Source of the DNA: Paraphysomonas bandaiensis | Lineage: Eukaryota > Protista > Chrysophyceae | Reading direction: 5' to 3' | DNA length: 64,000 bases | Assembly: GCA_965644295.1 (NCBI GenBank) | Contig: CBFFRP010000001.1 | Coordinates: 148,743-212,742, forward strand | Shown: positions 7,229 to 59,900 of the stretch, piece after piece | Layout: each line of letters opens with the position of its first letter | How positions within the stretch are numbered: position 1 is the first letter of the stretch | Made by a program: the position numbers and the translations under genes | Notes under the pieces: generated by a model | What the model was told of the DNA's origin: nothing | Seen by the model: only the letters and a program-made list of their open reading frames with translations | Database searches by the model: none

Positions 7229-7599
7229 TATACTGCAACTTCTTTGATATATGTAATAAGCACTCTAGTATCGTACTTTGTACTCTGATTTCAAGGAATT
7301 TAAAAGCTGTATTTCAAGGAGTTTAAATTATATATGTAACTTGAAGAATACAGTAGTGATTAACAGTATTATGGGAACTAATGTCATAGTAGTATTTATA
7401 TGAATATCTGATTATTACATGAGAACGGTTGTGTACAGAAACTAGTTTTACATCTATAGACTAACTAGTAGCTGGACTTGCTATATGCGACTAGTAGAAG
7501 TATTTATATTAGTGAAACTGATATATATTGACTGTCAAAGATCGTATGAACATGATTGGTAGTTGGGATGATAAGAATTTGGCGATTATTAACAATTAA

Positions 7600-27756: not shown

Positions 27757-27855
27757 CACTCACAACAGCATCAGCACAGAAGCCTTAGTGTCAGGACATT
27801 CGAGGAGGATGGCAAGAGCGAGCTGTGTTGAATAATGTACCTAGACACTGTAAAC

Positions 27856-27982
27856 GTATGTATGTATGTATGTATGTATGTATGTATGTATGTATGTATG
27901 TATGTATGTATGTATGTATGTATGTATGTATGTATGTATGTATGTATGTATGTATGTATGTATGTATGTATGTATGTATGTA
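27856..27982. repeat. (TATG)n microsatellite
   Basis: Perfect tetranucleotide run. Confidence 0.99.
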
Positions 27983-28724
27983 CTACGTAGGTACCATATG
28001 TAGGTAGCTATACGCGTATATCTTCGTAGTACGTGGATATCTTCCTGACGTTACAAGCTTTCTCCACTATTGGCATTCAAACCACATAATATCTACCACA
28101 TTATATTGCCGATACCTGACCTGTGCGCTTCTTGAAGTTGATAGTAGCTGTGGTCTGTACCATGGCCATCCCCTGAGCATGATCTGTAAAAATATACCAG
28201 AACACACCGAGGGAGGATGATGATCACCAAACCGAGAACAAACGGATCAGCAAAACCGTTAATCTACCTTCTATGCCAAGCAAATCACAAGGAAAGAACG
28301 AAGTAATCTAGGTCAGAGCTAAGTACTTATACTCACTTTATAGCAGTTACACGTCACATATCGTATCATACAGTATGAGCAGTACTGAATACATTGCCCA
28401 GTTGTCCATGATATTCACCTAGTCGAGAATAGAAATTTTGCTTGAACATGGAGCATATTGGTTAACGGAAAATCGTAATTGTTTAATAACATACTTACTC
28501 AATTACTCGAACGGTGTAGTCATGCCCATGTCGCTAGATATTCTTAAAAAGCAAGGTCAACTACAATGGAATGGACCCCCCCTCGTCTTTTCTATTATAC
28601 GGCTCATCAATGATTTCTTCTTTTTCATCTCTTAATCTTTGCAATTAGCTCTTAGAGTTTATCATTCTGCTTAACTTGCGTTAGGAGTACCACTTATTTA
28701 ATATTTATATCCTCGGGATAGTAT

Positions 28725-34259: not shown

Positions 34260-34763
34260 GTATAATAGCTTGGCTATCTTCCTTGAGATAGAGTCGTTGG
34301 TCTCCTTCCCTAAAACTTCCTAGTAGTTCCTCGTTTAAAGCGTTCCTAGGTTTCTTAAGTGCTTCAGAACATAATTTCAATCACATTGAACTTTGTTACA
34401 TTTCTTGTATCTGGAAAGTCATAAACAACTGTTCTTGCGTTCTGAGGTAATTATTTTTACTAATAATTTTATATCTCTCAATATCTGAATAATTGATTCA
34501 TTCCTTGAGTTTACATGTTTTCTTTTCTTGGGATTCATATAAGCAATAACTATTTAGAAACCTTCCGGGAGTTCTATTTACGTTTTCATCTATACTATTT
34601 TTTTATGTCACCCGTGTCGTGTAACTCTGTATAAAATATTATGCTTTGTTATCTCTTAAATTAATTATCATTATCAGGTAGATAGAAATGCGTTGGCTTT
34701 TCTCTTTGAAAAGATATTCATTATTCATTGCACGAAGTGTTTAATTTTAATTATTCCAAACCC

Positions 34764-37700
34764 AAATAAGATTTAAGGTTAGTCTTAATATTTAGTAAGA
34801 ATATACTTGATATTATTAGAGATAAAGATTGAACGATAAGGCCTAATAGTATAATAGCAAGACACGTTTGAGCAGAGCGTTAGCACCACACACATGTGCG
34901 TATCTTGTACAGTCGCGTATCATGTATAGTTTGGTAATTATTCAGTCTATTTGGTATTTCATTGTATATGTGTGTTGTATTCACGCGTTAAGAGATATAC
35001 GTGAATCAATGACTCCTAATACTCCCCCTCAATGAAATAATCATATGGCGTATACATAGATATATGGATATAGGTGTATATATTTGGAGATAGTTCTACT
35101 GAGGGTAAAACCCACGAGTGCAATCACAGATTGTGGATTACACTGATGTCAACATACAGCATACTCGTGGGAAACTCCGTAGATCTCTAAGTCATCCATC
35201 GTGGTCTCTTGGTTGAGTTCTCTGCCGGTGGGATAGATACTTTTGTTCTTTTATTGCTAGCAGGTATGTTGATACCTCCCCCCCCCATTAGTGAATCCCG
35301 CAATCTGTGGAACGTGTTTGATGTGAGGGGTTTAGTTAGAATGTCGGCCAGCATCTCGTTTGTAGGCATGTAATCAACAATAATAGAGTGCGATGCGACT
35401 TGTTCTCTTATGAAGTGATATCTGATGGCAATATGTTTTGTTCGTCGGTGGTGTACGGGGTTTAGGCATAGTTGAATTGCACCTTTGTTGTCACACCATA
35501 TGGTTGTTGAGTATGGCATGTGGAAGCCCAATTCCGAGAGTAGTGACCGTAGCCAAATAGCTTCTTGACATGCTGTTGATAGTGCCATGTACTCCGCTTC
35601 TGTAGAGGATAGAGCTACAGTGGTCTGGAGTCGTGATTGCCAGGAAATGAGACAATTTCCAATAAAGAAGCAAAACGCTGTGGTCGACCTGCGAGTTAAG
35701 TTACAGCGTGCCCAATCACTGTCAGCGAATCCAGTTAAAGTAACAGACTTCCCGGAGTACTGTAGACCTTGATCGATAGTGCCTTTGAGGTACCTAAGTA
35801 TGTTTAATGCGGCTTTGCATGTAGTTAGATTTGGATTAGTACTGAAACGAGCAAGGGTGTTTACAGCATATGCAATATCAGGTCTAGTGCACACAGCAAT
35901 ATACATAAGTGAACCTATGAGCTCCTTGTAAGGAAAATTTTGGACAAATTCTTGATTTTCTTGAGATAGTTGTTTCTTTTCGAGAATGTCTATATGAAAA
36001 TTTGTTGTCATGGGGTGACTACGTGGCTTGCAATCTTCCATGTTGAATCTGTGGAGTAGGTTCCGTATGTATTGAGATTGATTTAGTGTCGTAGTTCGAT
36101 TCTGTATATCCTGTTTGACGAATATGCCGAGGTAGTAATCTAGGAGGCCGAGATCATGAATGTCGAATTTTTCAGCTAACGAATTCTTGATTTGGATGAT
36201 GTCAGTCCTACTTTTACCGGCGATAATGATGTCATCGACGTAAACTGCCAGAATTATGGGTCGACCATTGATTGATTTCGTGAATATGCACGGGTCGGAC
36301 ACTAATCTGGTAAAACCACAGTCTAACAAATAATTAGTACAACATTTATACCAATTTAACCCGGACTGTTTGAGTCCGTATATACTCTTTAGAAGTCTGA
36401 GGACTTTACCGTTTGGAACATTGAGACCAGCGGGTGGATACATGTAAATTTCCTCTTGGAGGTCTGCATTGATGTAAGCAGTGGAGAAATCTACCTGGTG
36501 AAGCTCCAACCCAAGTATAGTTGCTAGTGCTATGACTGTTCTCATTGATGTGGCCTTTGCGACTGGGCTGTAGGTTTCGTTGTAGTCTTTACCCTCGACC
36601 TGGGAGAAACCTTGAGCCACTAACCTCGCCTTGAAGGTAACCTCATCTCGCTTGACCTTTACCCTAAACACGAATTTTCCCCTTATAATGTTGGAATTTG
36701 CTGGTGGTGTCGTTATCCTCCAACAGCCTTTGCTCTCTAGAGACTTGATTTCTTTGTTGATGGCTTTCAGCCATTGTTCCTTGTACCTGCCTGATAGTGC
36801 CTCGCCAACATTGTTAGGTGTGTTAGGTACATCATTGCTACATGTGTCATTTGCATGCATAATGATGTCAACATCATTCATGTATAATGTTCTGTAACTA
36901 TCATGTTTATCAGGTGTTTTGTGGTTGTACAAATATCTTTTATCAACATCACAGTGGTATATATTATCACCGAATTTGTGTACATTCATGATTACCCTTT
37001 TCCTGGTCTGCCTCTTGCTGTGGAGACTTTTCTTTACGCAACGGCTCACCTTGTGTCGGTGGGGTGTCCTTACACCCGTAATTGTGCCATCCGGGCTTTG
37101 CCGGCTCCTGTCACCCTGGGAATTCACAGTCTTGATAGCTCGTTTGACCTTACGAGCAGGGTGATCACGCTTGTTGTCACCCCGTGCCTCCTTCGGCACT
37201 GTATTCCGCTGAGCTTCTGCTGTGCGGCGAGGCCTTGCCTCCTTTTCATTTGAGTAGGGTCCTCTCAAATGGCTGTGACTCCCGCCCCGTGTGGCGTCAT
37301 GACGGCTGTCGGTTGAATTGCTCCTCCCTGGAGCTGTTCCTTCCACGGGGCATCCTGGTTCCTCTTGCGGGGGTGATACCGCGTTCTGATAACTGAAGTG
37401 CTCGGCGGTGTATCTTTCGATGTCCGCAGCGTGTATTGGGTCATTTAACTCGATGACTCGCCCTTCATTTTCTCGTGGGGCCAATCCTCTGTAAGCAGCC
37501 ACGTGGCCTTTGATGACTGTGATTCTTGTCGTGATGTATTGGAGGCCATCCTGTGGATCTGTGTGGGTCATTCCAACGAGGTATTGGAAGCTCTCGGTTG
37601 TTCGATTCTCTGAATTTTCTTCTCTCAGTGATGATTCGATTTCAGCGTAGTAGTTTTCCTTGACGTCGGGGATGCACTCATTGAAAAAGACGTGACTTGA

Positions 37701-40391
37701 GATTACGAAGTCCTTGAGTGAAGGTACATATATGACGTACCCTGGTCCATCTTCTCGGTATCCCATGAAGTACCCAATATGGCTATGTGGAGACCAATCG
37801 TTTCTTCTCTGAGACTTGTCTATGAATGTATGGCATTTGCAGCCCCAAATCCTGGCGTAAGATAAATCGGGGGCCTCGTCGTGGATGAACTGATACGGTG
37901 ATATGAATCCCTTTGCAGTGGCGCATGGCAGGCGATTTTTCATATGCGTGACGGTGGACATAGCCTGTTCCCAGAAGTTGGGTGGTAGGCCCGAGTTGCA
38001 AATGGATGCAAGCGTTCTTTCCTTGGTCGTGCGCCATGGTCGTTCTTGTGTGGGGTTGTCTTCTGGCGTGTACGGAGCGTTGAAGGTCCAGGTTGATCCT
38101 AATTTTCTCAGCAAGTTCAGTACACGATGTGATACTAGCTCACGGCCACCATCAGCATGATAGTGTATTAGCCGTTTGCCTTTCGAATGCAGATAATCCA
38201 CAATTTTCTGAATGCACTCAATGACAAAATCCTCGGTTCTGTGTTTTCCATAGAATGTCCAACTGTATCTTGAAGCTGCATCGGTAGCTCCAAAGACTAC
38301 GGTGTTTCCTGTGACTATTGCTGGAGGTGAAAATGGTCCAGTAAAATCAACTGCTATAAGTCCTCCAAGCTCCTGCGATCTTCTGGTTTTTGTCGGTATC
38401 ATTTGCCTTGTCTCGCGCCTATGTTTCCTCCTGTGAGCCTTGCCTTGTGCGCAGCCATCACAAAGGCCTTCTGGTAGCTGTGGCGAGCTCAGGTCGGATT
38501 TTGAAATAGTGATTCCTTTCACAAGATTCAACTTTAGTGCTTTTTGAATTAAGCCAATGGATGCGTGGGTCAACCTTCGATGTGCCAGGGAGATCGAGGA
38601 ACCGCTTGATGTAGATGCCAAGTTGCACTGGTCTTGGATGTAACCTAAATCGGATAATTTGATCTCGTATAGACCGTTTTGTTTCCTGGCTGTGGTTAAC
38701 AAAATTCCATCGTGGTATACGCGTGCCTCGTTTGGTCCGAATATAATATTGCAGTTGGCGTCTGTTGTCAACTGGCTGATAGAAATTAAGGTCTTTGACG
38801 CGTCTGGAACTAGCCTGCACTTGCTAATCAGTCCAAGCTTGCCGTATCCCAATGCCTGCATTTCTGATCCTGATTTGGCGGTGTAAATTGTGGTTTGATC
38901 GTAAGTGAATTCGGAGAGTAAGCTTCGTGCTGCTGTAATTGATATTGTGCAGCCAGAGTCTAGAATGCCAAATTCCTGCTTCTCGTGTTCCGTATGTAGG
39001 ACGTGGTTGTCTGTGATCATCCCAGAGAATGCACTGTAGTCATTGTCATCGTTTGGCCCCTCATCGTCATAGTCTTCCAGTCTTAAGTTCGAATCCCGAT
39101 GACTGTTTCTTGGGTATTTTGATGATGTGTTCTTGGAGTGATGCCCTTTCCCTCTTTTGTCGTCGTTTCGTTTGTTTGTGGACTTCTGCATCTGTTGTAT
39201 GTGTTCCCACGAGTGCTTGCACTCTGCTGCAATGTGGTTGGATCCATTGCATCTGAAGCACTTAACTTCGCGCGAGGCTCTTGTGACTTTGCTGGGCTTG
39301 TTGAATTTCTTCTGTTTTCGCTGCCCGTTGTTGTGCTTCTGCTTCTTCGGTAGACGGGGGTTAAACGGCTGTTTGCCTGTTGAGCTGTAGTTTGCGCTGT
39401 CCCGTTTGGTTTCCGTATTTTGTGATAGTAGGGAGCCTACAGTGGAATGCTCGAATGCTCTCAATCTTCTTATCAGCGTTTTATAATCATCAATTGGGTT
39501 CATTTGGAGGTTGATTGCCAGGTCCTTATAGGTCTGGTTCTCATTTGAGACCATCCCTTGTCGTATTCTTGAAATAAGGTCTTGTTCAGAGACTTTGTGG
39601 CCATGTGTAGCGAGCTTTAATCGCAATTTTTCGACTTCGTCCAGGAATTGATTGATTGTTTGAGCTTGCTTGATTTTGATTGATTGCAGTTGGCCAATGA
39701 GGTCGGTTATCGTATCATTTGAGGTCTTGTCTTTGAAATGCTTTTCGATCTCTGACCATGCCCTTTTTCCATCTCCTTCAGGGACTGTTTCGATAATACC
39801 CTCTGCTTCCTCGTTTTGGCCAATCACCGCGCTGGATAGAAGTGACCATAGGTAATTGTTGCCCTCCTCGAAATACTGCATATTTTCGTCGTAGGCGTTT
39901 TTCCTGTATAGGTAGTCCTCTTCTGTTTCTTCCTCTTGACGTATAGGCTCCTCTGGCGCATCGTTTCTTAGGATGTATACTATCTTAGGCTTACGAAAGA
40001 ACCAGGCTCTACTTTTCTTCTGCCATTTTGAGAAGTTCTTGGCGTCGAAGGGTGGCATGGAATCCTTCCTCTTGTCCGATGAGTCGGAGTCGGAGTTATC
40101 GTAACTGTTAGTCTTAGAACTCATCCGCTGCCAAAATAAGATTTAAGGTTAGTCTTAATATTTAGTAAGAATATACTTGATATTATTAGAGATAAAGATT
40201 GAACGATAAGGCCTAATAGTATAATAGCAAGACACGTTTGAGCAGAGCGTTAGCACCACACACATGTGCGTATCTTGTACAGTCGCGTATCATGTATAGT
40301 TTGGTAATTATTCAGTCTATTTGGTATTTCATTGTATATGTGTGTTGTATTCACGCGTTAAGAGATATACGTGAATCAATGACTCCTAATA
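34764..40391 (-). mobile_element. Full-length Ty1/Copia LTR retrotransposon
   Basis: 258-bp LTRs 34764-35021 and 40134-40391 (identical by eye); 5-bp TSD AACCC (34759-34763 and 40392-40396); PBS TGGCAGCGG; PPT GAGGGGGAG. Confidence 0.97.
35187..40124 (-). CDS. Copia polyprotein, intact 1645 aa
   Basis: CFRCNGSNHIAAEC, ILDSGCT, HRRLTH...CDGC, integrase core (VDFTGP, HADGG, QERPW), KARLVAQG, YVDD, ADSDW, ADILTK in Copia order PR-IN-RT-RH. Confidence 0.97.
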   Translation of the reverse strand: MSSKTNSYDNSDSDSSDKRKDSMPPFDAKNFSKWQKKSRAWFFRKPKIVYILRNDAPEEPIRQEEETEEDYLYRKNAYDENMQYFEEGNNYLWSLLSSAVIGQNEEAEGIIETVPEGDGKRAWSEIEKHFKDKTSNDTITDLIGQLQSIKIKQAQTINQFLDEVEKLRLKLATHGHKVSEQDLISRIRQGMVSNENQTYKDLAINLQMNPIDDYKTLIRRLRAFEHSTVGSLLSQNTETKRDSANYSSTGKQPFNPRLPKKQKHNNGQRKQKKFNKPSKVTRASREVKCFRCNGSNHIAAECKHSWEHIQQMQKSTNKRNDDKRGKGHHSKNTSSKYPRNSHRDSNLRLEDYDDEGPNDDNDYSAFSGMITDNHVLHTEHEKQEFGILDSGCTISITAARSLLSEFTYDQTTIYTAKSGSEMQALGYGKLGLISKCRLVPDASKTLISISQLTTDANCNIIFGPNEARVYHDGILLTTARKQNGLYEIKLSDLGYIQDQCNLASTSSGSSISLAHRRLTHASIGLIQKALKLNLVKGITISKSDLSSPQLPEGLCDGCAQGKAHRRKHRRETRQMIPTKTRRSQELGGLIAVDFTGPFSPPAIVTGNTVVFGATDAASRYSWTFYGKHRTEDFVIECIQKIVDYLHSKGKRLIHYHADGGRELVSHRVLNLLRKLGSTWTFNAPYTPEDNPTQERPWRTTKERTLASICNSGLPPNFWEQAMSTVTHMKNRLPCATAKGFISPYQFIHDEAPDLSYARIWGCKCHTFIDKSQRRNDWSPHSHIGYFMGYREDGPGYVIYVPSLKDFVISSHVFFNECIPDVKENYYAEIESSLREENSENRTTESFQYLVGMTHTDPQDGLQYITTRITVIKGHVAAYRGLAPRENEGRVIELNDPIHAADIERYTAEHFSYQNAVSPPQEEPGCPVEGTAPGRSNSTDSRHDATRGGSHSHLRGPYSNEKEARPRRTAEAQRNTVPKEARGDNKRDHPARKVKRAIKTVNSQGDRSRQSPDGTITGVRTPHRHKVSRCVKKSLHSKRQTRKRVIMNVHKFGDNIYHCDVDKRYLYNHKTPDKHDSYRTLYMNDVDIIMHANDTCSNDVPNTPNNVGEALSGRYKEQWLKAINKEIKSLESKGCWRITTPPANSNIIRGKFVFRVKVKRDEVTFKARLVAQGFSQVEGKDYNETYSPVAKATSMRTVIALATILGLELHQVDFSTAYINADLQEEIYMYPPAGLNVPNGKVLRLLKSIYGLKQSGLNWYKCCTNYLLDCGFTRLVSDPCIFTKSINGRPIILAVYVDDIIIAGKSRTDIIQIKNSLAEKFDIHDLGLLDYYLGIFVKQDIQNRTTTLNQSQYIRNLLHRFNMEDCKPRSHPMTTNFHIDILEKKQLSQENQEFVQNFPYKELIGSLMYIAVCTRPDIAYAVNTLARFSTNPNLTTCKAALNILRYLKGTIDQGLQYSGKSVTLTGFADSDWARCNLTRRSTTAFCFFIGNCLISWQSRLQTTVALSSTEAEYMALSTACQEAIWLRSLLSELGFHMPYSTTIWCDNKGAIQLCLNPVHHRRTKHIAIRYHFIREQVASHSIIVDYMPTNEMLADILTKPLTSNTFHRLRDSLMGGGGINIPASNKRTKVSIPPAENSTKRPRWMT

Positions 40392-40774
40392 AACCCTAAT
40401 CCTAACCTTAACCCATTCTTTACTTTTGAGTGTTTTTTTAAATCAAACTCTTCAATTACAGTTATGCCAGACACACGTGGAATTTGAACCAACCTCTTAT
40501 TATGTAAACTTTGAGAACTGTTTTGGTAGTACAGTGTTTTATTTTCAGGTACACTACTACGAAAGCATCTCACACAACGAAGTATTGAAACCAATGTTAT
40601 TTTATTTCACCATTCGATATGACTTTCTTAAGGCACATTGTAGCAGCAAAAATAGAGAGAGAAATATATATGAAAGAGATACCTATACAGGAGACATATG
40701 CATAATGTCTAAACAGTACATTCTACAGGCGAATAATTACATGGTACCATGAAGGACTATATTCAACGTGGGGC

Positions 40775-41877
40775 TCATCGGGATACGAGGTGAAGGTTTG
40801 TCATGAGAAGGCACACTGCACATGAATGTGAAACTCAAAAGTTAACCATAAGCTCAGTAATACCTTGCTCAATAGTGTCCAGTGCCTCCTCTAGTGCGGC
40901 TCGGTATTTGGAGCTATGTACCAACTTGCTAACAACAACTATCAACAGCGATCTACAGAAAGAATGAAAGCTCAGAACAGATAGTGACCACACGGACAAA
41001 TCTCTCACCTCTCCTGAATACGCCATAGTAGGAGACGGGAGTTATGGGAGGAGTCCAGCATAATGTGAATACAATCGTCATCAACATTAGCCACTACAAA
41101 AAAATTACGACGTGATAGCCAAGCAGTACACCTACTTATATCAGTGCAAAGCCCAGTTAGAGCCTGCAAATTAGCCAGCACTCCAAGCTGATCAATTTCA
41201 GGATTTGGGGAGGCAACTGTTCCATCTTCTGTCACCAAAAGTGCCTTCAGTATTCCTTTGTTATATTGTACTGAATACAAAGTACATAAGTGCAGTCAAG
41301 AGTACAATGATGATGCACACATTGGTATAACACAGGTTTCACCGAGTTTCTAATGATGTCGGCAATCTTGTTATGAAAGCCGTGAAAATCTTTTAAGTTA
41401 AGGCCAAAGTTGGTGAGATCTGATGAATATTCCTGTATAACGAATATTGACTTAAAGAAGAAACCCAGTTCAGGTGTACCGTCGTAAATGCGTTGAGTAT
41501 TTCACTGCATATCAAACGGCCAAACGCGCACCCATCATCGCGGTCGTGAAATAATGCACAGAACACCTTCGCGACGTCATTTGTCACAAGAGTAATCGCC
41601 ACTGTAAAAACCAAGAAAGTGGTTACTACTGGATAAAGAACCATTCGCAACTTACCATTCGATAGTTCTATGTATGATACTTGCATCCCCGATGTTTGCT
41701 GGGAAAATTCAATCATTGCAGTCAGAAGTGATCCAATCAGGCGTGGCTGGTATAATTTTACACTGGTGAGATCTGTCATCACAAGGCGAATGCAGTCACC
41801 TGAGCTACAGAGTTAACAAACTCTTTTGAAAAGAGAACCAAACCACTTGTCGCCATCAGTAAGACATTATGTATCAT
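40775..41877 (-). CDS. Conserved-looking uncharacterised protein, predicted longin-like N-domain plus roadblock-like C-domain; ~7 introns
   Basis: Spliced MIHNVLLMATSGLVLFSKEFVNSVAQ|PRLIGSLLTAMIEFS...FCALFHDRDDG...EILNAFT...GILKALLVTEDG...LLIVVVSK...LVSR*; GT-AG introns keep the frame. The fold assignment is inference. Confidence 0.75.
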
Positions 41878-41992
41878 GATTACACTATCTATGTAAGGCT
41901 CGGTGCTCAAGCTGAATACACTAACTGTGAAATAATTACATGTATTTTAACTGCTCCTCACAAAACCGTATTATTTAAGTTTACGTATTACG

Positions 41993-41995
<3 letters not shown>

Positions 41996-42025
<30 letters not shown>

Positions 42026-42503
42026 TGTATGTATGTATGTATGTATGTATGTATGTATGTATGTATGTATGTATGTATGTATGTATGTATGTATGTATGT
42101 ATGTACATGTATGTATGTATGTATGTATGTATGTATGTATGTATGTATGTATGTATGTATGTATGTATGTATGTATGTATGTATGTATGTATGTATGTAT
42201 GTATGTATGTATGTATGTATGTATGTATGTATGTATGTACATGTATGTATGTATGTATGTATGTATGTATGTATGTATGTATGTATGTATGTATGTATGT
42301 ATGTATGTATGTATGTATGTATGTATGTATGTATGTATGTATGTATGTATGTATGTATGTACATGTATGTATGTATGTATGTATGTATGTATGTAGGTAG
42401 GTAGGTAGGTAGGTAGGTAGGTAGGTAGGTAGGTATGTATGTATGTATGTATGTATGTATGTATGTATGTATGTATGTATGTGTGTATGTAGGTAGGTAG
42501 GTA
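41996..42503. repeat. Compound (TATG)n/(TAGG)n microsatellite, ~500 bp
   Basis: TATG run with CA interruptions at ~42106, 42240 and 42362, and TAGG tracts near the right end. Confidence 0.99.
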
Positions 42504-42566: not shown

Positions 42567-45500
42567 ATGTCGCGAAAAGTAGGCAAAGGTAGTAATAGAA
42601 GAAACGTGAGGAGTGCTGCCACTAGTGGGTTCGCAACTGGTTTTCTGGATAACAGCAGACCTGTTTCTCAATCTGGAGCGAGAAAGGGGGGCATGCCTGT
42701 GGAGAGTGATGATGATGATGATGACCTGCCGCCGCTTGTAGGAGAAGATGATGATGATTCTAGTGGATCGGTGCCTGAGTTAGTATCTAACAGCGACAGT
42801 GACTCAGATGATGAGAAATTCCTCCCACCTGCACCTGCTCGAAATAGATTTGAAGAGGACAGGCTACGGAAAGCTGAGCAGGAGCAGAGAAGATTAGAGG
42901 AGGAACGAAAGAGATTAGAGGAGGAACAGAAGAGATTAGACACACTAAAGAAGAAAGAAGAGCTGGAAATGAGGATGAAAGAAGAGTTGAGGCGCAAGGA
43001 AGAAGACCGGAGAAAGTTGGAGTTGTTACGCAGTTGGAGTGCTAGCCTCATTCAAAGCCGGTACAGGGGCCACTTTGTGAGGACAATATATGCACCGGAA
43101 ATAGCTCTACGAGTGGAGTCTCGACGAGCCTTCTATTCGAGATGGGGAGCCACTCATCACGTGGTCACTTCCAAAGCTTGTAGCAACAAGGCACCCAAGG
43201 CTTTCTCGTGGTCTGATCAGAAAGTCCGCTACGATATGGTGGTGTGTGCGGACGAGACGGAGGGAGTGGGTGGCTTGAGAGAATTCCGAGAGATTACAGA
43301 GAAGGTTGCTTTTGAGAAGCCTTCTGTCACGGAGATAAACGACGAATATTTTGACTCTGACCCGTTAGAAGAAGAAGTCAAACCAGAGAATGAGCGAAGA
43401 GAAGAAAAATACTTGGTGCTGGCGTCCGTAGATAACATAGAGATATCCAATCCTGTCAACAAATGGTTAGATGCCGCTGATTCTAAGTATAGGCAGATGT
43501 TTCTGCGGCGTATCGAGGAGCTGGCGCGTGGCCACCGAAGCTATGCATACAGCAAGCGTCTTATCGGATGTTCCCACCCACTCTTTGAGGCCAAACTAGA
43601 TGCTGGTATGCGTATCATGTGGACTGAGCTTCACAGACAAGGTGAAGCGCCCTCCATTATGGTGAGTAGTTAGGTTGTAGGTATGCTATCCTCTCATGCA
43701 TTTCCCAGATTTGGTTTGTGAGCAAGCACGACAAGGTGCCTCATTATGTGAAGCTCATGAATATGTATTTTTCTCGTCAGAAGACTGCACGTGATGCTGC
43801 TGTGGGTATTGAAGGTGATGCAATATCGCTTGGGGAGCATACCTGTCTTCTTGACCCAATAGGAAACTCCCCAATGAAAATCTATATGGCATCTAGGGAT
43901 GACCTTGCCACGATAGGGATCTCAAACCGTAAGCTACCACTGCGGCTCAGCTCCCATGAGAAACGCGTTAATTCACACGAGGGAACTGTACTCTTATTAG
44001 GTCGATCTGGGACAGGGAAAACAGTATGTCTGTGTAACCGCATGACCCAGGATCGCATTCACCTTAAGAGCTCGCATGGCAGGAACGTTATCACTCAACT
44101 CTTCGTTTGTAGAAGCCGGAGACTAAGAGACAACGTTTCGAGATACCAACAAGAGTACTGCTACGCTGGTACCGGCGACGACATGATGTCTGCGGATTTT
44201 TTAACGATAAACAGTTTCATTGCGCAGCACATGGCATCGGCTGTATTCGGCAATCGTGGGCGGCTTCGCTTTGAAAAAGTAAAAGAAGTTGACTTTCGGC
44301 GGTTTAAAGAGGAATTCTACCATGATATACGCCCGAAGAAAGGGCAAGTTCTTGATCCACTAGTTGTCTGGACTCAAATTCGGTCGTTTATAAAAGGGTC
44401 TGTAGAAACTGTAATGCATGCACTGGGCCGAGGAGAACCGAGACCCGAATCTTGGGAGTTTGGTAATGATCCCTGGGTGCACAAAGAGCAGTACATGAAC
44501 TTTTCCTCTGGTCGATGCAGGTTGACAATGGAACAGAGAATAGCTGCGTATGATATGTTCGTACATTACCAGCACGAATTGCATCGGCGAGGCCTTTGGG
44601 ATGAGGGGGACCGCATTATGGATTTAATACGTGGCTCACAGCTTAATGGTACGCTCAATTACTCTGGACGGGACGGCCCCTACGACAAGGTCTATGTGGA
44701 CGAGATTCAGGATAGCACACAAGCGGAGATCCTTCTCTTCTTCCTTGCAGCGGGTATGAATTATCAGGCATTATTCCTTGCCGGAGACCCCGCACAGAGC
44801 GTTGTTGAGGGAGTTGACTTCAGGTTTGAAGAGGTACGACAGCTTGTGTACCTAATTAGCGGGAAAACAGCACGCTTAGATAAGCTCGAGAAGCTACAGG
44901 TCAACTACCGCAGTCATGCTGGAGTTATTAGCTGTGCTGCTGGAGTCCTTGAACTGTTGTTCTCGATATTCCCAGATTCTGCGAAAGTTCTTCCCAAGGA
45001 CCAAGGGCTTTGCAATGGCCCGCGCCCTGTGTATATCCGCGACTTTGATCACGAGAACTCTAAGCTGCGACACATTCTGTTGACGGATCCTAAAATGGTT
45101 GTGCTAACTCGAGACGAATACTTCGTGGGAGAGTTCGAGGATACGCTATCCTCTGAGCACGGAATGGCTGATATCATACCCTCTAGTACCCTCAAGCTCA
45201 GCATCAGAAATGCGAAGGGAATGGAATTCTCTGATGTTCTACTTGTAAACTTTTTTTGTGTCCTGTCCACAGAGGAGCAATCTTGGTGGAAACGGACATT
45301 AGACAGGACTGCAAACAGCGTTGAGGAGACACAGTTCCCACAGATGGAAACTCAGCTTAAATTATTGTACACCGCAATTACCCGTTGTTGCAATCGACTC
45401 GTTTTCGTAGAGACGAAGCAGTCCCGGGCTGGAGATGCCTTCTTTCGGTGGCTTAAACATAATGATTTAGCTGAAGAGTATGTTCAACCCTCACAGGATG

Positions 45501-45898
45501 CTGATGCTGTCACGGGATTAATGAATAATGATGAGTGGCGCGCTAGAGGAATTGAGAGAGTGATGGCAGGTGATGGTAGCATTCCGCTATTGCGAAATGC
45601 TGTGAGCTGCTTTACTTGCGCTGGTGATAAGGATTTGTTGGCTAGAGCCCAGCTCCTCCTCGACATCGAATTATTTAAGAACCGTATGTCCAATTTGTTG
45701 AATGTAACGAATACTTTTGACGATAAGACTGAAGCTACTGTTGCCGATATGATAAAGAGATGTGTTGAAAAGAATATGTTCGTTGACGCAAGTGACATGT
45801 GTGAACTGGTGTGCCCGCATATTGACAATAACCACCAAAGACTTATTTTTCAAAAGGAGGTATATGATGTTGTTAAATATTTAGCGTCACAACACTAA
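42567..45898 (+). CDS. TRANK1-like protein: acidic/coiled-coil N-terminus, IQ motif, RelE/ParE-like domain, UvrD-type SF1 helicase; one intron 43662-43708; ~1094 aa
   Basis: IQSRYRGHFVR; LFEAKLDAGMRIMW; GRSGTGKT, VDEIQD, AGDPAQS, NYRS, AKGMEF, LYTAITR. The 47-nt GT-AG intron joins the two ORFs in frame. Confidence 0.88.
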
Positions 45899-45982: not shown

Positions 45983-47452
45983 TCAGTATATTGGTGGCAA
46001 TTTACCCCTGCTCAAGACATTTAGTTCGAGCAGAAGTGGGTTAGTTCTTCTTTCCTTCCACGCTGAATTTTGAACAATTTCTGCGTCTGCACCCAGATGG
46101 AATTTCATCCCAGGGGACTGACGAATTAAATCATCAAATTGTACCCGGGCATCATCTAGATCACGCTGTTCTTCTGTATCTGATTGCATGATTTTATAGA
46201 CGATGTTAAACTTCTCTAAAAGCACTCCTATTCTGGCACGATCCACCACTGACAAAAAGCAACACATCACCATTAAAATCACACCTACGCAGATGCGCGG
46301 ATAATTCATATAATATACAGCGAAATCCATTTGATGTTCAGCTTAGTAGGTGTGGTAGTCTATTCCTGCGCAGCTTACTTGCACTTTTTAACTGACGTAG
46401 TTTGGTGCATAGTTGGACAAAAAGTTATCCACCAAGTCGGAGTACCCCTCAGCCCTCAGCTGTCAGAAACTTTATTACAGCCAGGTTCAATAATTGTGAC
46501 TTGTGCAACCCATTAAAGGTGATGATGCCCACATATAACGGTTCAATTAATCTGGCCATTTTCGGGTTACAAGCAGTGTTGTCACCAGTAATGAACTCAA
46601 CACAATTGAAGTCCAACTACATTAACTTTAACTCATCAAACAGATAATCTCCGATTAATTCTGCTGTAAAATCAGAATCCTCATCTTCATATATTGCACT
46701 CCACAGCATAGATAGCAACACTTGTTTGACATATCTATCTAAAGGATCACTTCCTTGTCAAACCACCCCGCATGGGACTTGTGGTGTGGTTTGAGAATTG
46801 CGTCTACCCTGATCCATTTTTTTGCTTCATTAGGCCCTTCTCGACTGCATATTATTCTCTGCATTGCTATTTAAAATCCCAGTTTTTTAGTTCTTCTCTT
46901 GTAGTTCCAAAATACTCATAAAATCTGTTCATTCGATGCCATTCCGTTCAAAAACTTTAATAGTGATAAGCATGACTATTCAATGATTATTGTCCATTAT
47001 AGTTACACCCACACATATATACTACTTTTCCTCTGATAGTGGTACCTAACGGATACACTACTATACTTGAATATTTCGAAGCAGTGGAATATGTGCAATC
47101 CCCTAATATATTTCTTTGCCAGAACGATCTTTGACATGCTACAATATATTGCTCCTGCGTGCTGAGGTTAAAGTGTATACTAACCCTATATACTACTATC
47201 ACACGTTATACAATTATGATTAATAAAATGATAACGTGGCCTTGCACATATATATACAATGTCATGGTCAAACTTCTATATAATAATATGCAAACAATTA
47301 ATGGGTTGTACCTTTGAGCATTAGCTATATACATCATTTTAAGATGCTATCTATATATATAATATATCATTGGCAATTTTATTAATTGGCAACATTTACC
47401 AATAAGAAAATAATAATTGAATCTGACACTTTTAAAGCCAATTAATTTAATC
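45983..47452 (-). mobile_element. Decayed hAT element with transposase remnant
   Basis: DARVQFDDLIRQSPGMKFHLGADAEIVQNS; ~46920-47450 is colinear with ~23650-23880 plus ~24960-25190. Confidence 0.7.
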
Positions 47453-47463
47453 GGATGAATCTA

Positions 47464-49075
47464 TAGTAGTGAATGTCTTATGATTAGCAATAGGCGTTTA
47501 GGATTCAGAACTACTACTGTAGCAAAGCAATTTAACTAACTAACTAGTGCTTAACTCTGATATCCTACTTTATTTAACGCTACGAAAGCTGCTGGAGTGC
47601 GTCACCGCAAGTACCAAGGTGCGACCACCTCCACTTTAACGCTATCACTCTAAGCAAACGCAGTGAGCAAGCAGAATGTTGATATACCTGACATCTGCTG
47701 ACTTCAGAGTTGTTGAGTCCTTAAGGTGAACAGCCCGGATGCTTGACTGCAGCAAGAAACCGAAACCCAGGATGGATGCCCTTGAGGTGGGCCCATTCCC
47801 GGATGACTGTTTATTTGCCAAGGCCCGGGTTCCTGAATATAAGGGCTTGGATTACTGCTCACTACCTAATAACAAGAAGAACACGAAACATCATTGATGA
47901 CAGTGTCAGGTCTCTAACGCCCTACTAACTGCTAACATCCTTGTCCCTAACACGATTGTAAGGCTCGACGACCAAGAAATGAACTTTACCAGAACTACTC
48001 AATTCTAACGATTGCGAAGCGGAAATATAATAATATATTGTATGAAGTATACACTATCTGTATTATTAATAAATGGGTGCAGTATATGCTATATGCTACC
48101 ATGTTTGAGTGAAAAAAAACATATAATTGTTGAAAGTTTGTCCAACACACTCATAACACCACTGCAGTGTCATACACACACACAGTACACTCTACCTCCT
48201 CCTCGAGAACCCCCAGACAAACTATCTCCTCTCCCTTCGTCTCTGATACCTTGCCGTCATCTTCCTTCCACACATACTCTATGCCTCAGCCTGTACCCCC
48301 CTGCACCAACACAGACACTAACAAGGGCAGCTGAGGACGTCCGAGTGTCTCCTCCAGACCATCATCATCATCATCTCGTGCATAGGTCTATCAGAGTACT
48401 CGACCTCAGTGACTCTTGTTCTGTTGCGCAGTCTCACTCTCCTCAATCAGATGTTGCCTCTCTTGCACCATCTCACTCCCTCTCGACTCCCTGTAGCTGG
48501 ACACACCGGATGACCCTCACATCCCACCCCTGTACAGCTATACACCCTCTTGCATGTGTTCTCTACCGCTGGCTAAGACAGCAAAAGAACCGATTTCGAC
48601 GCTTCTTCACAGTAGGCCATAACCTTTTGCAAGACCTTCATCATCCACATACCTCCGAGCCACTTGGAACAATGCCTAAAGGAAGGCCACCAGATCGCCA
48701 ATCTCAGAAGGGCATATTACTGTTTCCCCTAACTGCCATAAGGCTAATAAGTCAGTCCCCGTGAGGTACATAAGGCTATCTATCATATAGCGAGTGGAGT
48801 CTCATCCCAAGAGGAGACCTCCAGATCACACGCGCCGGTGAGTCCCAGGACACACGATCATGGCGAGCCTCATAACACACACTAAGAACGGAAGTGGCTG
48901 CACCTTGGTGCTTGCGGCGACGCACAAGCAGCTTCTGTAGCGTTAAATAGTAGGATAAAAGAGTTTGTATTGATTAGTTACGGGTAGTAGTCTAACTAGT
49001 ATGACTAGCATTCTTCTAGCCACTAATTGGTGCAGGCTTTCAACGCCTATTGCTAAATAATCAGACATTCAATAT
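47464..49075 (+). mobile_element. Hairpin-ITR repeat family, copy 3 (longest, both outer and inner ITRs)
   Basis: Outer IR 47471-47498 / 49042-49070 (GAATGTCT...TTAGCAATAGGCGTT); inner IR ~47561-47628 / 48894-48957; ORF remnants MPKGRPPD (~48732) and HPKRRPPDHTRR* (~48804). Confidence 0.85.
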
Positions 49076-49531
49076 TGAAAGTTTGTTTTTGTATCTATTC
49101 TTTTGTATGAAAGGTATGAGCAGTAAATATTAACTTGGCGAATAATACATACAAGTATTTCTTTATCTCTCAGAAAAGTATTCAAATAAAAGGTTTTTAA
49201 GACATGCTCCCTGCACACTATATAACCTGATGTGAATACGAGCAGTAGCACTTGATTCTAATTTATTCCGGGTATAAATGTGGTTAGCTATAAATATGAA
49301 ATCAGATATTACTTCGATTAGTCAAATCGGGTTCTATAAAATTCATTTCTTTCGAAACGTAAATCGAGAATGGATCCTTAATCAAATTACACAATTACTA
49401 CCATATCCAAAGTTTTATTTTCCCAGAAATATTGATAGTGGCCAGTACAGTGTCTCGATGGTAAAAGACAACAAATTAACAACAATAGTATCGAAAGTCT
49501 CATATCATCGTTAAACATCGGCCGACGCATG

Positions 49532-53712: not shown

Positions 53713-54862
53713 CATATAGAAAAGTCTGATTATTACATGAGAACGGTTGTATCTAGAATTTGTAATGTAGCTATGGACTTAATAATATGAGTCGCTATTT
53801 ACTGAATTCTTCAACCATCTCGGGACTGCTTGTGCATTGCTGCAAGCACACTTGGTGCAACCATCCCTTGTATTGGAGTTAGTCCGGGGGTCTACCTTTG
53901 GGCAGTGTTTCTGGCGTTCCAGTGCCGCACGTTACTTGAGGAGTGGAGTGAATGACATGTATGTGGGAGTGTAGGTCGGTTACGGAATGTCTGCTAGTCC
54001 TTGTGTTAGGAGTGCTGTCTATGGCAAGTAGCTGGGATTGGACCTTGTCGATGGTTTCTCGGAATACTATTCTCCCACATCTACATATATTAATATATAT
54101 ATATTATAACTCTGACCCACCCTTAAATGTCGCGGACCCCTACCCCAAAGGGCAAAACACATCCATCGTACACATTAGGATGTTGCAGGTGCATTATTAT
54201 AGTACTACCATCTCATTAGAAGGCAGTTGTTTCCGGAGTGGATGTGCAGGCCTGGGCTGGGGTCGGGTTCGAGTGGGGGGTATGATTCTAGGAGTGGATG
54301 TTGCTCGGAGTAGCTGGAGTAGTTTCGGAGTGGGGTCGGTCCTCTGGGTGGGGTGGGGTGTATTGCATCGGGGGATGTGGGGAGCTGTATCGCATAATAT
54401 AGGTTCTTTGCGTCGAGCACAATGTGTAGACATGGCTACATGGCTCATATGGCATGGAACAACGCCCAAACGGTGCATGGCGACACCGCCACATTCCACC
54501 ACACCATCACCCTCTCAGTCCACACATCTAGTGCTCGGTACACTCAGGACCTTAATACAGAACCCGGTACCTCAGAGCCAGGCGGAACCGTATCCCAAGG
54601 GGAGACCCCCGGACAACACGCGCCAGTGAGTCCTCAGACACACGAGCAGGGCGAACTCACACACAACATCAAGAACGGAAGTGGTTGCACCTTGGTGCTT
54701 GCGGCGACGCACAAGCAGCTTCTGTAGCGTTAAATAGTAGGATAATAGAATTTGTGCTGATTAGTTATGGGTAGAGGTCTAACTAGTAGACTAGTATTCA
54801 ACTAGCCGCTATATCGGAACGAGTTTTTAACGCCTATTGCTAAATAAAAAGACATTCAATAT
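53713..54862. mobile_element. Hairpin-ITR family copy 4: composite of two opposed 3' ends with RT-derived interior
   Basis: Left: B-type hairpin 53823-53863 with LPKGRPPD* on the minus strand (stop 53879-53881). Right: YPKGRPPDNTRQ* (stop 54627-54629), A-type ITR ~54680-54745, outer end 54857. 54038-54065 is identical to 62162-62189. Confidence 0.8.
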
Positions 54863-55209
54863 GGCATGGAACACAACAGCGGCTTCGAAATGGGACGGTA
54901 TGTGTGTGTTGAGTGGAATAGAGTGGGCGGAGGTAACGGTGAAACGGAGGTTCTCTGCGGTCGGCACCATGTGTAGACTAGACTGTATCGCGACGAAAAT
55001 AATGCGCGGACAGGTCGATATGGCTCATGGAAGATAAGGAGTTGTGTGTGTTTGTTGTTAATGTATGGGGTGTGATGTAAGAAGGTATAGTGGCATAGTG
55101 TAGGAAGGAGTAGATGCAGTGAGGTTGGAGTGTGTCGTTGTGGAACCAGGATGGCGTATACCTGGTATACATCAGAATACTGGAGTGGTAAGGAAGAGCG
55201 TATATGGGC

Positions 55210-56936
55210 TGTAGTACTCTTGCGCAGAGAAAAAACACGGTACTCGGTCGGAAGTCACGGATGCTACAGATCAATAAACGGACGGAATACCCCCGTTGCC
55301 TTTTTACACTTCTAGTCTACAGCCGTACACAAAACACTGCATAATATAACACCAGTTAATGGACAGTATACGATTTACCTTGCACATATGTTACATCGTA
55401 CATAACCTCCACATCTGATTGACATAGCACACTCGCACGTAAATGATCAGCCGTTGTGCAGGGAAAGAATTGATCCAGATCTCCTACATTTGGTAACTCC
55501 ATAGCGTGCCCTGAGAGTCCTGCCACGGTACATTTCCTGGTCGCCGGCCTTATATTGTGCAGTAATGCAGGGTGAACCACTGATACGTCCGCCTGATTAT
55601 CTAGCAGTGCCTCGTACTACCTGAATGGGTGGCCTCCGGATGTGAATGCGTTCTTTAGGGTCACCGCACAGTTTCTCTCCCCAACATATCAGGGGTTTCC
55701 TCCGTTGTTCTCTGTGCCGTGGATTCTTCTGCCCTCTTTTGAATTCTTTGTGGTCGTCTCTGTCGCCATTTTCGTCAATGTCGCCTGTGAGGTTCTCCTT
55801 TATTTGTGCCTTTCCGTTTGATTTAGTAACGAAGGCTGCTCCTCCTGCCGTGCGCGTTTGTCGCTTGGCCGGTAAGTATTTGGACACCTTGTTGTAAATT
55901 TCATTTATATGTGTTGGCGCACTCTGTGTTCCCATTGTAGTTTTAAAATCGCTGTATCTCGCGTCGTCTAGATCGTTGAAAAAATCCATCGCCACACCGG
56001 TGTCTGGCATTTTTGCGTTGTCCATTTCTTTTATATGCCTCCAGTAAATAATCAAATTTCTCCTTGTAACTCACGATGCTTTCGAACGTTCCTTGCCAAA
56101 CTTCTTGGTATTTTCGCCTAGTCTCTGCTTTCATTACTGCTCCCACATTGGAGCTTGTCGCCACCTTGTGTGTCTTTTTTATTGCAAGCCATAGCGATAG
56201 TGGATAATAGTTTTATAGCGTCGTGGGATTCGTTGCTCAGGTGCTGTATCATGAATCCGTACAGTGGGATTCTGTTCTTGGCCATATCTCTCCTATGGCC
56301 CGAGATCTTCTGATACATTGATCTTCGATCTCCTTGTACCCGATGGGGTCTGTCCTCGGATTGACATCCCTGGAGTCGGGTCTCGGTGGCTCGTAGTACT
56401 CGTCAAGGTCTCCGTACCTCACCATGGCTTCGGCCACCAATTTCTGCTTGAAGATAGGCAGATTACATTTTGCGCCATATCTTAGCATTGGCACTGCGTC
56501 ATAACTGTGAGACTCTTGTCTTCTTCCAGATCTTGTATATCTGGGATATCTCTCTTTTGTCGTTTTCTTCATAATTTTCTCTTACGCAGACAAAAAACAC
56601 GGTACTCGGTCGGAAGTCACGGATGCTACAGATCAATAAACGGACGGAATACCTCCGTTGCCTTTTTACACAGTCTACACTACAGGTAGTCAAAGCAAGG
56701 TTCTCTTTGCAGTTACTACAGAACTCGTTAGTAAGAGAAAATTATGCTTCAATGCACCAAGGTGCTTGCAGCAATGCACAAGCAGTCCCGAGACAACTCA
56801 GTATTTAGCAACTTTGACACCACTAGTCTAAAGTCGTAGATAGCTAAAACAAAGTAGTTCTCTCTTGTAATAATCAGATCTTTATATATGCTTCTAGTCT
56901 ACAGCCGTACACAAAACACTGCATAATATAACACCA
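55210..56936 (-). mobile_element. Decayed, internally deleted Copia-like element (gag + protease only) between short LTR-like direct repeats
   Basis: Repeats 55210-55351 and ~56580-56933 (the latter interrupted at ~56670-56890); frameshifted gag (VPMLRYG, QHLSNES, QGTFESI, AMDFFNDLDDARY) and protease LLDNQADVSVVHP; no TSD found. Confidence 0.75.
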
Positions 56937-59900
56937 TACACCTCTATGTGCCCTATGCATATCTTATACAGTCACTTCAAGTACTAAACTGAAAAGAACA
57001 TCCTCTGATTTCTCTACGGGCGGGAGACGTATGTTGGGAGTTCCTACGGCGTGTACTCTGGACAATATACAGTGTAATATACGGTATATTCCAGTGGTGT
57101 AGGTTGCGTGTATATGACTGAGTTTCGGTGGTGTGTGTGATGATGTTGGAGTGGGTGTGATGGAGGAGTGTAAAGTATGAAAACACCGTAGACGAGGTTT
57201 GTGATGGAGCTCTGGTACCCTTAATATTCCACAGGGCGTGTTCGGTGCAAGTAGGCGCCTCCAGGGTGGTTTCGGGTGTTGTGGGATAGGCCAGTAAGCT
57301 TGGAACAGCGTTTCCAGATGTTTCAGCGAGCTGATGTGGGCGAAATTGGCTGTTGAGTAAACCCGCAGCTGTCGGATATGCAGCTGCGGGGATGGCACTG
57401 GGGGAGGCCATGCTGTGGGTCAGAGCAACACTGCCAGGGATGCATCCCTGCACTGGAGTGTGTGTAGGCTCGATTTGTAATGTGTTATTGGGTGTTTGCG
57501 TCTATCCAAAGACCTGAATGTGTAGGTGTTGTAGTGTGGTCACCGTGAGGTGGATGTGGTCATGTGGACGGAGGTAGAACATGTAATAAGAAGTTTTCTT
57601 AAATGGTGCCTGTTGCTTCCTAGAGCTAGAGAATTATATATGATTCACACAAGTCGTGTAACCTTGCTGTATATCTTAAAAGTTGGACCAGCCCTCCACT
57701 TGTCGGACTGTAGATGGTCCAACACTCGAAATAAAAGAATTGTGGTCACACTCATCTTCCATACGAAAAAACACAATACAAAAAAAGTGGGGCCAGACTG
57801 GTCCGCTTTTTGTCGAAAACGTCTCCATGGTATATGTTGTATGGTATATATATATACACCAGAGTAATAATAATAACTTGCTTTTTGCTTTTAGTTAGTT
57901 TTTTCAACTTTGGGGGGAAAAATAGTGTTTTTATGCAAGTCTAGAAATATGCATATTTTTAATGTATTTTTTAGAGTTTTTGGGTACGTTGCTTGCTATG
58001 TATATATTGCTCACCAGGAAACTATTCTCTAAAACTCTAGAATGCATTGAGAAGATATTTAACAAGGTTGCCACAAAGTACTTGTAGAGTTGCATGAACA
58101 TTATTGTCTATTATTGTTTAGAGTTTCTTCGGAGTATAGAGGAGATACATACTATATTATCTTAAAAACACTCAGTTCTATATATAAAGTTGATGTGATG
58201 ACCAAACCTGCTGGTGCAACGCTTTAAACCTGGTGAAATTTTAAATGTTGATTTAAGTTGTTTTGCAATATAAAAGTAATGTAGTATATAGTAGGTGTAA
58301 AAAGAACATGTTATTAGAGATATTTAATAAATTTTATATTAGTTACAGGTCCAAAAAGTGAGAATGTAACGGTTAATGTAACGGTTACATTTATATATAT
58401 ATAATATACTGCTCCCACATTGGAGCTTGTCGCCACCTTGTGTGTCTTTTTTATTGCAAGCCATAGCGATAGTGGATAATAGTTTTATAGCGTCGTGGGA
58501 TTCGTTGCTCAGGTGCTGTATCATGAATCCGTACAGTGGGATTCTGTTCTTGGCCATATCTCTCCTATGGCCCGAGATCTTCTGATACATTGATCTTCGA
58601 TCTCCTTGTACCCGATGGGGTCTGTCCTCGGATTGACATCCCTGGAGTCGGGTCTCGGTGGCTCGTAGTACTCGTCAAGGTCTCCGTACCTCACCATGGC
58701 TTCGGCCACCAATTTCTGCTTGAAGATAGGCAGATTACATTTTGCGCCATATCTTAGCATTGGCACTGCGTCATAACTGTGAGACTCTTGTCTTCTTCCA
58801 GATCTTGTATATCTGGGATATCTCTCTTTTGTCGTTTTCTTCATAATTTTCTCTTACGCAGACAAAAAACACGGTACTCGGTCGGAAGTCACGGATGCTA
58901 CAGATCAATAAACGGACGGAATACCTCCGTTGCCTTTTTACACAGTCTACACTACAGGTAGTCAAAGCAAGGTTCTCTTTGCAGTTACTACAGAACTCGT
59001 TAGTAAGAGAAAATTATGCTTCAATGCACCAAGGTGCTTGCAGCAATGCACAAGCAGTCCCGAGACAACTCAGTATTTAGCAACTTTGACACCACTAGTC
59101 TAAAGTCGTAGATAGCTAAAACAAAGTAGTTCTCTCTTGTAATAATCAGATCTTTATATATGCTTCTAGTCTACAGCCGTACACAAAACACTGCATAATA
59201 TAACACCATACACCTCTATGTGCCCTATGCATATCTTATACAGTCACTTCAAGTACTAAACTGAAAAGAACATCCTCTGATTTCTCTACGGGCGGGAGAC
59301 GTATGTTGGGAGTTCCTACGGCGTGTACTCTGGACAATATACAGTGTAATATACGGTATATTCCAGTGGTGTAGGTTGCGTGTATATGACTGAGTTTCGG
59401 TGGTGTGTGTGATGATGTTGGAGTGGGTGTGATGGAGGAGTGTAAAGTATGAAAACACCGTAGACGAGGTTTGTGATGGAGCTCTGGTACCCTTAATATT
59501 CCACAGGGCGTGTTCGGTGCAAGTAGGCGCCTCCAGGGTGGTTTCGGGTGTTGTGGGATAGGCCAGTAAGCTTGGAACAGCGTTTCCAGATGTTTCAGCG
59601 AGCTGATGTGGGCGAAATTGGCTGTTGAGTAAACCCGCAGCTGTCGGATATGCAGCTGCGGGGATGGCACTGGGGGAGGCCATGCTGTGGGTCAGAGCAA
59701 CACTGCCAGGGATGCATCCCTGCACTGGAGTGTGTGTAGGCTCGATTTGTAATGTGTTATTGGGTGTTTGCGTCTATCCAAAGACCTGAATGTGTAGGTG
59801 TTGTAGTGTGGTCACCGTGAGGTGGATGTGGTCATGTGGACGGAGGTAGAACATGTAATAAGAAGTTTTCTTAAATGGTGCCTGTTGCTTCCTAGAGCTA

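Follow-up and report, generated by a model that had tools for sequence, protein, structure and literature searches.

The region at 47464-49075 of the window (the whole 64,000-nucleotide stretch of Paraphysomonas bandaiensis DNA analysed here) very probably consists of two separate, oppositely oriented insertions of LINE-dependent retroposons with a common LINE 3' tail, and not of one element bounded by inverted terminal repeats (ITRs). An old family A copy on the minus strand lies ~300 bp from a family B copy on the plus strand, with the 5' ends facing each other, so that the homologous tails at the two outer ends read as nested inverted terminal repeats. The kind of element behind this region is already known, and neither a new retroelement class nor an integration route other than TPRT is required. 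The region contains the following features.

47464-47826, minus strand: family A non-autonomous retroposon, 5'-truncated, aligning to positions ~232-592 of A copies with 78-80% identity.
47553-47632, minus strand: hairpin block of the inverted A copy, the same block as in the B tail (left arm of the apparent inner inverted repeat).
47827-48129, no strand: single-copy spacer of ~300 bp between the insertions, outside any repeat, as judged by a match to itself only and single-copy contig depth.
48130-48141, plus strand: left copy of a 12-bp target-site duplication (TSD), TTGAAAGTTTGT, identical to 49075-49086.
48142-49074, plus strand: family B retroposon, 5'-truncated, covering ~710-1645 of a 1.65-kb non-coding element, 98% identical to full-length copies among L022-L030.
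48885-48963, plus strand: hairpin block of the B tail with a CUUG-loop and a GNRA-loop hairpin, conserved in A, B, D and LINE 3' UTRs (right arm of the apparent inner inverted repeat).
49075-49086, plus strand: right copy of the 12-bp TSD TTGAAAGTTTGT, identical to 48130-48141.

An earlier note had described one family recurring at about 8098-9057, 14343-15056, 47464-49075 and 53713-54862 (copies 1 to 4 below), and repeats at these places were indeed found by self-BLAST. The region 47464-49075 itself matches 1191-1477, 8452-9057, 14338-14957, 54592-54862, 56753-56785 and 59025-59057. The inverted repeats reported in that note, ~28 bp outside and ~65 bp inside, are present as inverted similarities of ~30 bp (47467-47498 versus 49042-49074) and ~70-80 bp (47553-47632 versus 48890-48965). 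The two halves behave very differently in searches of the 62.5-Mb genome, from which 42 loci were fetched in all. The left 297 nt have thousands (~3000) of first-look candidates, the best non-self match being 83% identical, whereas the right 272 nt are found with 100% identity at at least 40 other loci. The stretch 48139-48803 matches at least 39 loci with 97-98% identity, and all of these matches have one common start point. Between the halves, 47761-48138 matches only itself, and the contig depth of the spacer is 28-115, compared with thousands for the repeats. The left arm is ~80% identical to its own family and the right arm 98-100%. The arms thus differ in both age and subfamily, the left A copy being older and the right B copy recent. 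No TSD surrounds the composite as a whole; TSDs flank halves instead, and the composite recurs nowhere else in the genome. The ORF at 48012-48764 has no match in Pfam and resembles a chance frame in a non-coding repeat.

Family A is ~570-590 bp in full length, and its sense strand has the 3' end ...GACATTCACTACTA. The left-hand copy has its 3' terminus at 47464, with the sense strand ending ...AAGACATTCACTACTA. A TSD was sought around the terminus of this old copy and nothing convincing was found; several A copies elsewhere have candidate TSDs of 8-11 bp, ~570-590 bp apart. Most A copies stand without an inverted partner: in 16 of 20 other copies, none is present within 9.8 kb (9.8 kb on the 5' side was covered). 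Direct partners (L012, L013 and L014) and inverted ones (L002, L010, L016 and L019) occur with similar frequency. The proposal that intervals between inverted pairs are bounded units is contradicted by these unpaired copies, as well as by the single-copy sequence at 47761-48138.

Family B was defined from nine fetched loci (L022-L030). The element is non-coding and ~1.65 kb long. Its 5' end, ATTCTCTGCCCTACGATGG..., is fixed, and its 3' end reads ...CAGACATTCAATAT(A), i.e. ...CAATAT(A); L025:795-2440 is a full-length example. Seven full-length copies elsewhere have TSDs of 9-13 bp, some with 1-5 extra nucleotides (A or T) at the 5' junction. A fixed 3' end, such TSDs and such 5' junctions are hallmarks of TPRT. 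The copy at 48142-49074 terminates in ...CAGACATTCAATAT, and 5' truncation is also seen in L026, where the B copy starts at ~635. The statement in the earlier note that no TSD is visible does not hold, as TSDs flank 48142-49074, 54462-54862, 7398-7498 and 56680-56891 in addition to the seven full-length B copies. In full-length members the 3' end is a defined ...ATAT(A) tail and there is no ITR, which comes close to the outcome that the same note had named as speaking against its own reading.

The insertion of the right half is polymorphic. Public run X3 represents another sequenced isolate. In record 11 of its contigs (2817 nt), 47783-48129 is joined straight to 49075-49300 with a single copy of the TSD. 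This is the exact empty site for the B insertion at 48142-49074. Contigs from runs X1 and X4 span the filled junction of this insertion, and the X3 contigs in records 9 and 11 keep the left-hand A copy and its junction at 47464. The B copy was therefore inserted on its own beside a pre-existing A copy, since X3 retains the left half only. The insertion is recent and polymorphic, being present in X1 and X4 and absent from X3. The comparison of filled and empty sites that had been suggested as a check on an ITR-bounded element thus removes the right half only, and one copy of its TSD stays behind. At least 40 B copies are 97-100% identical, which suggests that family B is probably active at present. 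Contigs of family B were found in polyA marine metatranscriptomes (run X9); they are compatible with transcription of the family and are no proof of it.

These observations bear directly on the reading of the region as a single retroelement with nested inverted terminal repeats, a panhandle transcript and non-TPRT integration. The outer and inner inverted similarities at four places in the window and the absence of poly(A) are what such an element would show. However, its halves would have to be of unlike age and subfamily, the right halves have TSDs of their own (12 bp at 48130-41 and 49075-86, and 11 bp at 54451-61 and 54863-73), and the empty-site allele in X3 still has the left half. In addition, the composite neither has a TSD around the whole nor recurs as a unit, most family members lack an inverted partner, and the LINE encodes a standard APE. 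This reading is essentially excluded. The new class that had been proposed falls on the same grounds, namely the separate TSDs, the empty site in X3, the two subfamilies and the APE in the LINE.

Two independent neighbouring insertions, as in 47464-49075, are also found in copy 4, and the other copies and fragments in the window consist of tails of the same kind.

7398-7498, minus strand: solitary 5'-truncated LINE tail of ~100 nt, with the TSD AGTATTT(ATAT) at 7391-7401 and 7499-7509.
8452-9057, no strand: copy 1, a D-type tail (minus strand, hairpin block 8452-8564) abutting an A-type tail (plus strand, 8778-9057, terminus at 9057).
14338-14976, no strand: copy 2, an A-type tail (minus strand, 14338-14590) abutting a D-type element (plus strand, 14590 to ~14976).
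53715-54348, minus strand: left arm of copy 4, an internally deleted or diverged LINE copy, identified by blastn to the LINE 3' parts of L033 and L037 (73-85%) and by tblastn.
54462-54862, plus strand: right arm of copy 4, a B-like 3' tail of ~400 bp, 85% identical to the B tail.
56680-56891, plus strand: solitary 5'-truncated LINE tail of ~212 nt, with the TSD AGTCTACA and a paralogous empty site at 55309.

On its 3' side, the left arm of copy 4 terminates at 53715. It contains the LINE 3' UTR, the C-terminal ~110 aa of the ORF and 36 nt from the RT region. This RT piece accounts for the match between 54038-54065 and 62162-62189, which is exact over 28 nt, as had been reported, and extends to 36 nt at 94%. 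A TSD was sought around this deleted LINE copy at 53715, and nothing convincing was found. The B-like tail at 54462-54862 is flanked by its own 11-bp TSD, GGCATGGAACA, at 54451-54461 and 54863-54873, read directly from the sequence. The ORF at 53952-54629 is without a match in Pfam and looks like a chance frame in a non-coding repeat.

We considered double priming in a single event, in which both nicked target strands prime on the tails of two RNAs and yield a head-to-head chimera. Such an event would naturally produce the tail-out arrangement seen in each of the three close pairs in the window. However, a single TSD should then flank the pair as a whole and no TSD its halves, and copies 3 and 4 show the opposite. 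Moreover, X3 carries the left half without the right, and the divergence of the arms from their families is very unlike (80% on the left, 98-100% on the right). Double priming is therefore very unlikely, and separate insertions remain our preferred explanation for these pairs.

Copies 1 and 2 are mutual inverted duplicates with 89-98% identity. When the junction at ~14590 was used as a query, A copies matched one side and D copies the other, and only copy 1 spanned both. Matches to the D family end near 14959, and ~80 bp of flank outside the element (14977-15056) are common to copies 1 and 2 only. The common flank and the unique junction indicate that the two copies arose by local segmental duplication, not by transposition of a unit. 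The inverted duplication (8098-9057 and 14338-15056) contains a 190-bp indel at 8226-8418 and brackets ~5.3 kb.

The end fragments listed in the earlier note are solitary 3' tails at 1411-1477, 7398-7498, 56680-56891 and 58952-59163. The fragment at 1411-1477 is such a tail, and the one at 56680-56891 is repeated at 58952-59163 within a tandem duplication of 2272 bp. This duplication (56135-58706) shows 100% identity over at least 300 nt. It carries the LINE-tail insertion and is therefore younger than the insertion.

The orientation of the pairs could also reflect a true preference of independent TPRT insertions for sites just upstream of, and antisense to, an existing copy, through local chromatin or the endonuclease. 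The three independent close pairs in the window are all tail-out, and three further tail-out pairs within 2 kb are found at L002, L010 and L030. Outside the window, however, pairs within 2 kb comprise three tail-out, three direct and one tail-in, the choice of the window pairs came from a reading aimed at inverted repeats, and the sample is tiny. Since the pairs are few and those in the window were chosen as inverted, we give a mild insertion bias a small chance, clearly above that of double priming. Independent insertion by TPRT, with or without such a bias, is the reading followed below.

The elements are held together as a group by their 3' tails. We aligned the tails of two LINE lineages, of families A, B and D and of the fragments in the window, and found two conserved blocks, a hairpin block and a terminal block. 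The hairpin block reads ...GGUUGCACC(UU/AA/AU)GGUGCUUGC(G/A)G(Y)(R)A(Y)GCACAAGCAG..., and the terminal block reads ...AATAATCAGAnnTTnATAT in the LINEs and B and ...AATAATAAGACATTCACTACTA in A. The presence of the hairpin block in two opposed tails gives rise to the apparent inner inverted repeat, and the terminal block gives rise to the outer one in the same way. Copies end in ...ATAT(A) or ...CACTACTA without poly(A) or a simple repeat, which confirms the absence of poly(A) reported previously.

The proposed hairpins are GCAC-(CUUG, CAAG or CAUG)-GUGC followed by UUGC(R)-(GNRA)-(Y)GCACAA. The two-hairpin structure was proposed by hand, and pairs were counted over 40 distinct tail sequences, each pair being formed in 34-39 of the 40. 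Pair 18-23 is G-C in the passengers, whereas the LINEs have A-U there; this is the one base pair that shows covariation. When RNAalifold was run on the tail block, neither local hairpin was recovered. Structural support for the hairpins, which comes from counts on a structure proposed by hand, is therefore modest. Whether a tail has a CUUG or a CAAG loop depends on its lineage, all tails being read in sense orientation. A group of LINEs at 49% identity may carry the CUUG-type tail. The hairpin block may be the recognition site of the RT, as its conservation across LINEs and passengers suggests.

These termini also bear on whether the copies could be a TIR DNA transposon or MITE with captured LINE fragments. 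The ~30-bp terminal inverted similarity and the heterogeneous internal regions would fit such an element. However, the composite ends have no fixed-length TSD, neither the copies nor their surroundings yielded a transposase ORF, and the termini are the LINE's own 3' terminus. The 5' truncation and the variable-length TSDs are what TPRT predicts. We regard this explanation as extremely improbable and take the termini as the 3' tails of retroposons.

The passengers were searched for RNA-derived heads. Rfam at the gathering level detected no ribozyme (hammerhead, HDV-like or other) and no SINE head in the window and 12 loci, and its E-value mode gave neither on 47300-49300, L025:700-2500 and L006:150-900. 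No 5S, 7SL or tRNA was found by Rfam inside the passenger elements, and ARAGORN was negative for tRNAs in 10 loci with A or B copies. Passengers A and B are not classical SINEs, as a Pol III-type head is not detected while the tail in common with the LINE is present. It is worth noting that L002 (G000:C441) contains two tandem 5S rRNA genes at 478-597 and 784-903 (100.7 bits each), which lie outside the element; this gene pair is near a pair of A and B tails.

The partner LINE is represented in the window by one copy that is cut by the window end.

61172-64000, minus strand: body of the partner LINE with its RT domain, running off the end of the window, 3' end missing.

The RT ORF at 61754-63922 (minus strand) matches RVT_1 with E=7.5e-19. 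The LINE from which this fragment derives is present in many genomic copies, and open frames in some of these reach 3731 aa. The window copy is 93-94% identical to L033 over ORF residues 475-1375, and the match ends at 61172. Pfam searches of the 1655-aa segments of L033 and L037 place Exo_endo_phos (E=2e-7 and 1.7e-6, residues ~74-190) upstream of RVT_1 (632-910). We note that the evidence for APE comes from L033 and L037, as this part of the window copy would lie beyond base 64000. The domain order in these segments indicates that the partner is an autonomous LINE with an ordinary APE endonuclease upstream of its RT. Of the LINE-type RT and RNase H ORF described earlier, the RT stands, and RNase H was detected in the presumed LINE region neither by Pfam, also at relaxed settings, nor by a PDB sequence search. 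Neither a tyrosine recombinase nor a GIY-YIG domain was detected in the neighbourhood of the copies, and APE and RT are the only Pfam domains in the 1655-aa ORF segments.

The LINE ORF ends ...LPKGRPPD (...GPPDTLPKGRPPD), ~170 nt before the 3' terminus, which leaves a 3' UTR of ~170 nt. The PKGRPPD-type ORF end noticed just before the 3' tail is therefore the LINE's own C-terminus, and the coding remnant is real; family B and the right arm of copy 4 keep the PKGRPPD codons as a relic. With the 3' tail and these codons in common, the idea of the earlier note that the copies are non-autonomous or deleted derivatives of an autonomous LINE-RT element is borne out.

In metagenomic relatives of the LINE (P0001 and P0002), a SET domain (PF00856) is followed by APE and then RT in one protein. 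A histone-methyltransferase-like SET domain in a LINE would be unusual, and a literature search on SET-domain LINEs in stramenopiles gave nothing specific. The order with SET is known from these metagenomic relatives; the L033 locus (G000:C644:8342-13477) is a segment without the far N-terminus of the giant ORF.

In the mechanism that we propose, an autonomous LINE with APE and RT and a structured 3' tail, free of poly(A), is at work in this stramenopile genome. The non-coding families A (~590 bp), B (1.65 kb) and D, as well as deleted LINE copies, bear the LINE tail, and their RNAs would be copied in trans by the LINE machinery through TPRT. The endonuclease would nick the target, and the RT would recognise the tail, as in the 'stringent' type, and prime on it. 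The outcome would often be a 5'-truncated copy with a variable TSD of 8-13 bp. TSDs of 8-13 bp are found in 11 insertions overall. The variable TSDs, the 5' truncation and the empty sites indicate standard TPRT, to which stringent recognition of the tail would be added. Insertion by TPRT, the common tail and the APE and RT domains are seen directly in these copies, and the assignment of particular passengers to particular LINE lineages is putative. In the established stringent-type model, the 3' UTR of the template is what the RT recognises, and copying in trans extends to non-autonomous RNAs with the same tail (PMC3747384). Stringent-type LINEs do not need poly(A) (PMC3747384).

The window also contains repeats and genes of other kinds. 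Two LTR retrotransposons are located at 28721-34263 and 34761-40396, with LTR pairs (300 and 266 nt) that are 99-100% identical and long ORFs of 1344 and 1645 aa. A nested palindrome at 23018-24406, centred near 23750, has inverted arms of 56-99 nt with 90-97% complementarity. Tandem arrays with an 8-bp period occupy 41851-42500 and 27728-28116, and the ORFs on both strands there are probably repeat artefacts. An ORF pair at 42567-45898 includes a UvrD/SF1-like helicase (PF00580, E=1.8e-10). For a host gene in the window, diatoms and other ochrophytes supply the closest named relatives, with identities of at most 46%.

Stringent-type pairs of LINEs and SINEs with a common 3' tail include UnaL2 and UnaSINE1 of eel and SINEs with CR1/L2 or RTE tails. 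As in these pairs, the passengers described here carry the 3' UTR of the partner LINE with a conserved stem-loop, poly(A) is not needed, and variable TSDs and 5' truncation are observed. Unlike those SINEs, the passengers have no detectable tRNA, 5S or 7SL head, and passenger B, at 1.65 kb, is too long for a SINE. The tail differs as well: it has two tetraloop hairpins side by side, one with CUUG or CAAG and one with GNRA, and it ends with ATAT or ACTACTA. In addition, the host is a stramenopile, and the partner LINE has unusually large ORFs. The LINE itself resembles APE-type LINEs in the position of Exo_endo_phos upstream of RVT_1. Further points of agreement are 5' truncation, TSDs of variable length, and 5' junctions with additional nucleotides or small deletions of the target. 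It differs from the usual members of this type in its open frames of up to 3731 aa and in its metagenomic relatives with SET upstream of APE. The likeness to DIRS and to Penelope-like elements with inverted pLTRs is a superficial one of inverted terminal similarity only. Unlike in those elements, the RT here is of the LINE type with an APE, the apparent ITRs belong to separate insertions, and no tyrosine recombinase, GIY-YIG domain or hammerhead ribozyme was found.

These differences raise the tentative and rather doubtful idea that the LINE represents a new stramenopile lineage, with giant SET-APE-RT ORFs (~3700 aa) and a double-tetraloop 3' handle that would mobilise head-less passengers, including an active 1.65-kb element, perhaps with a preference for head-to-head insertion.

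The analysis removes a false lead, as no new retroelement class or non-TPRT route is needed. What it describes instead is a clean case of stringent-type tail sharing between a LINE and its passengers in a marine stramenopile, with a polymorphic insertion and its exact empty site, and the tail offers a candidate RNA motif for recognition by the RT. For annotation, inverted neighbouring tails of this kind could be mis-called as TIR elements in diatom-like genomes.
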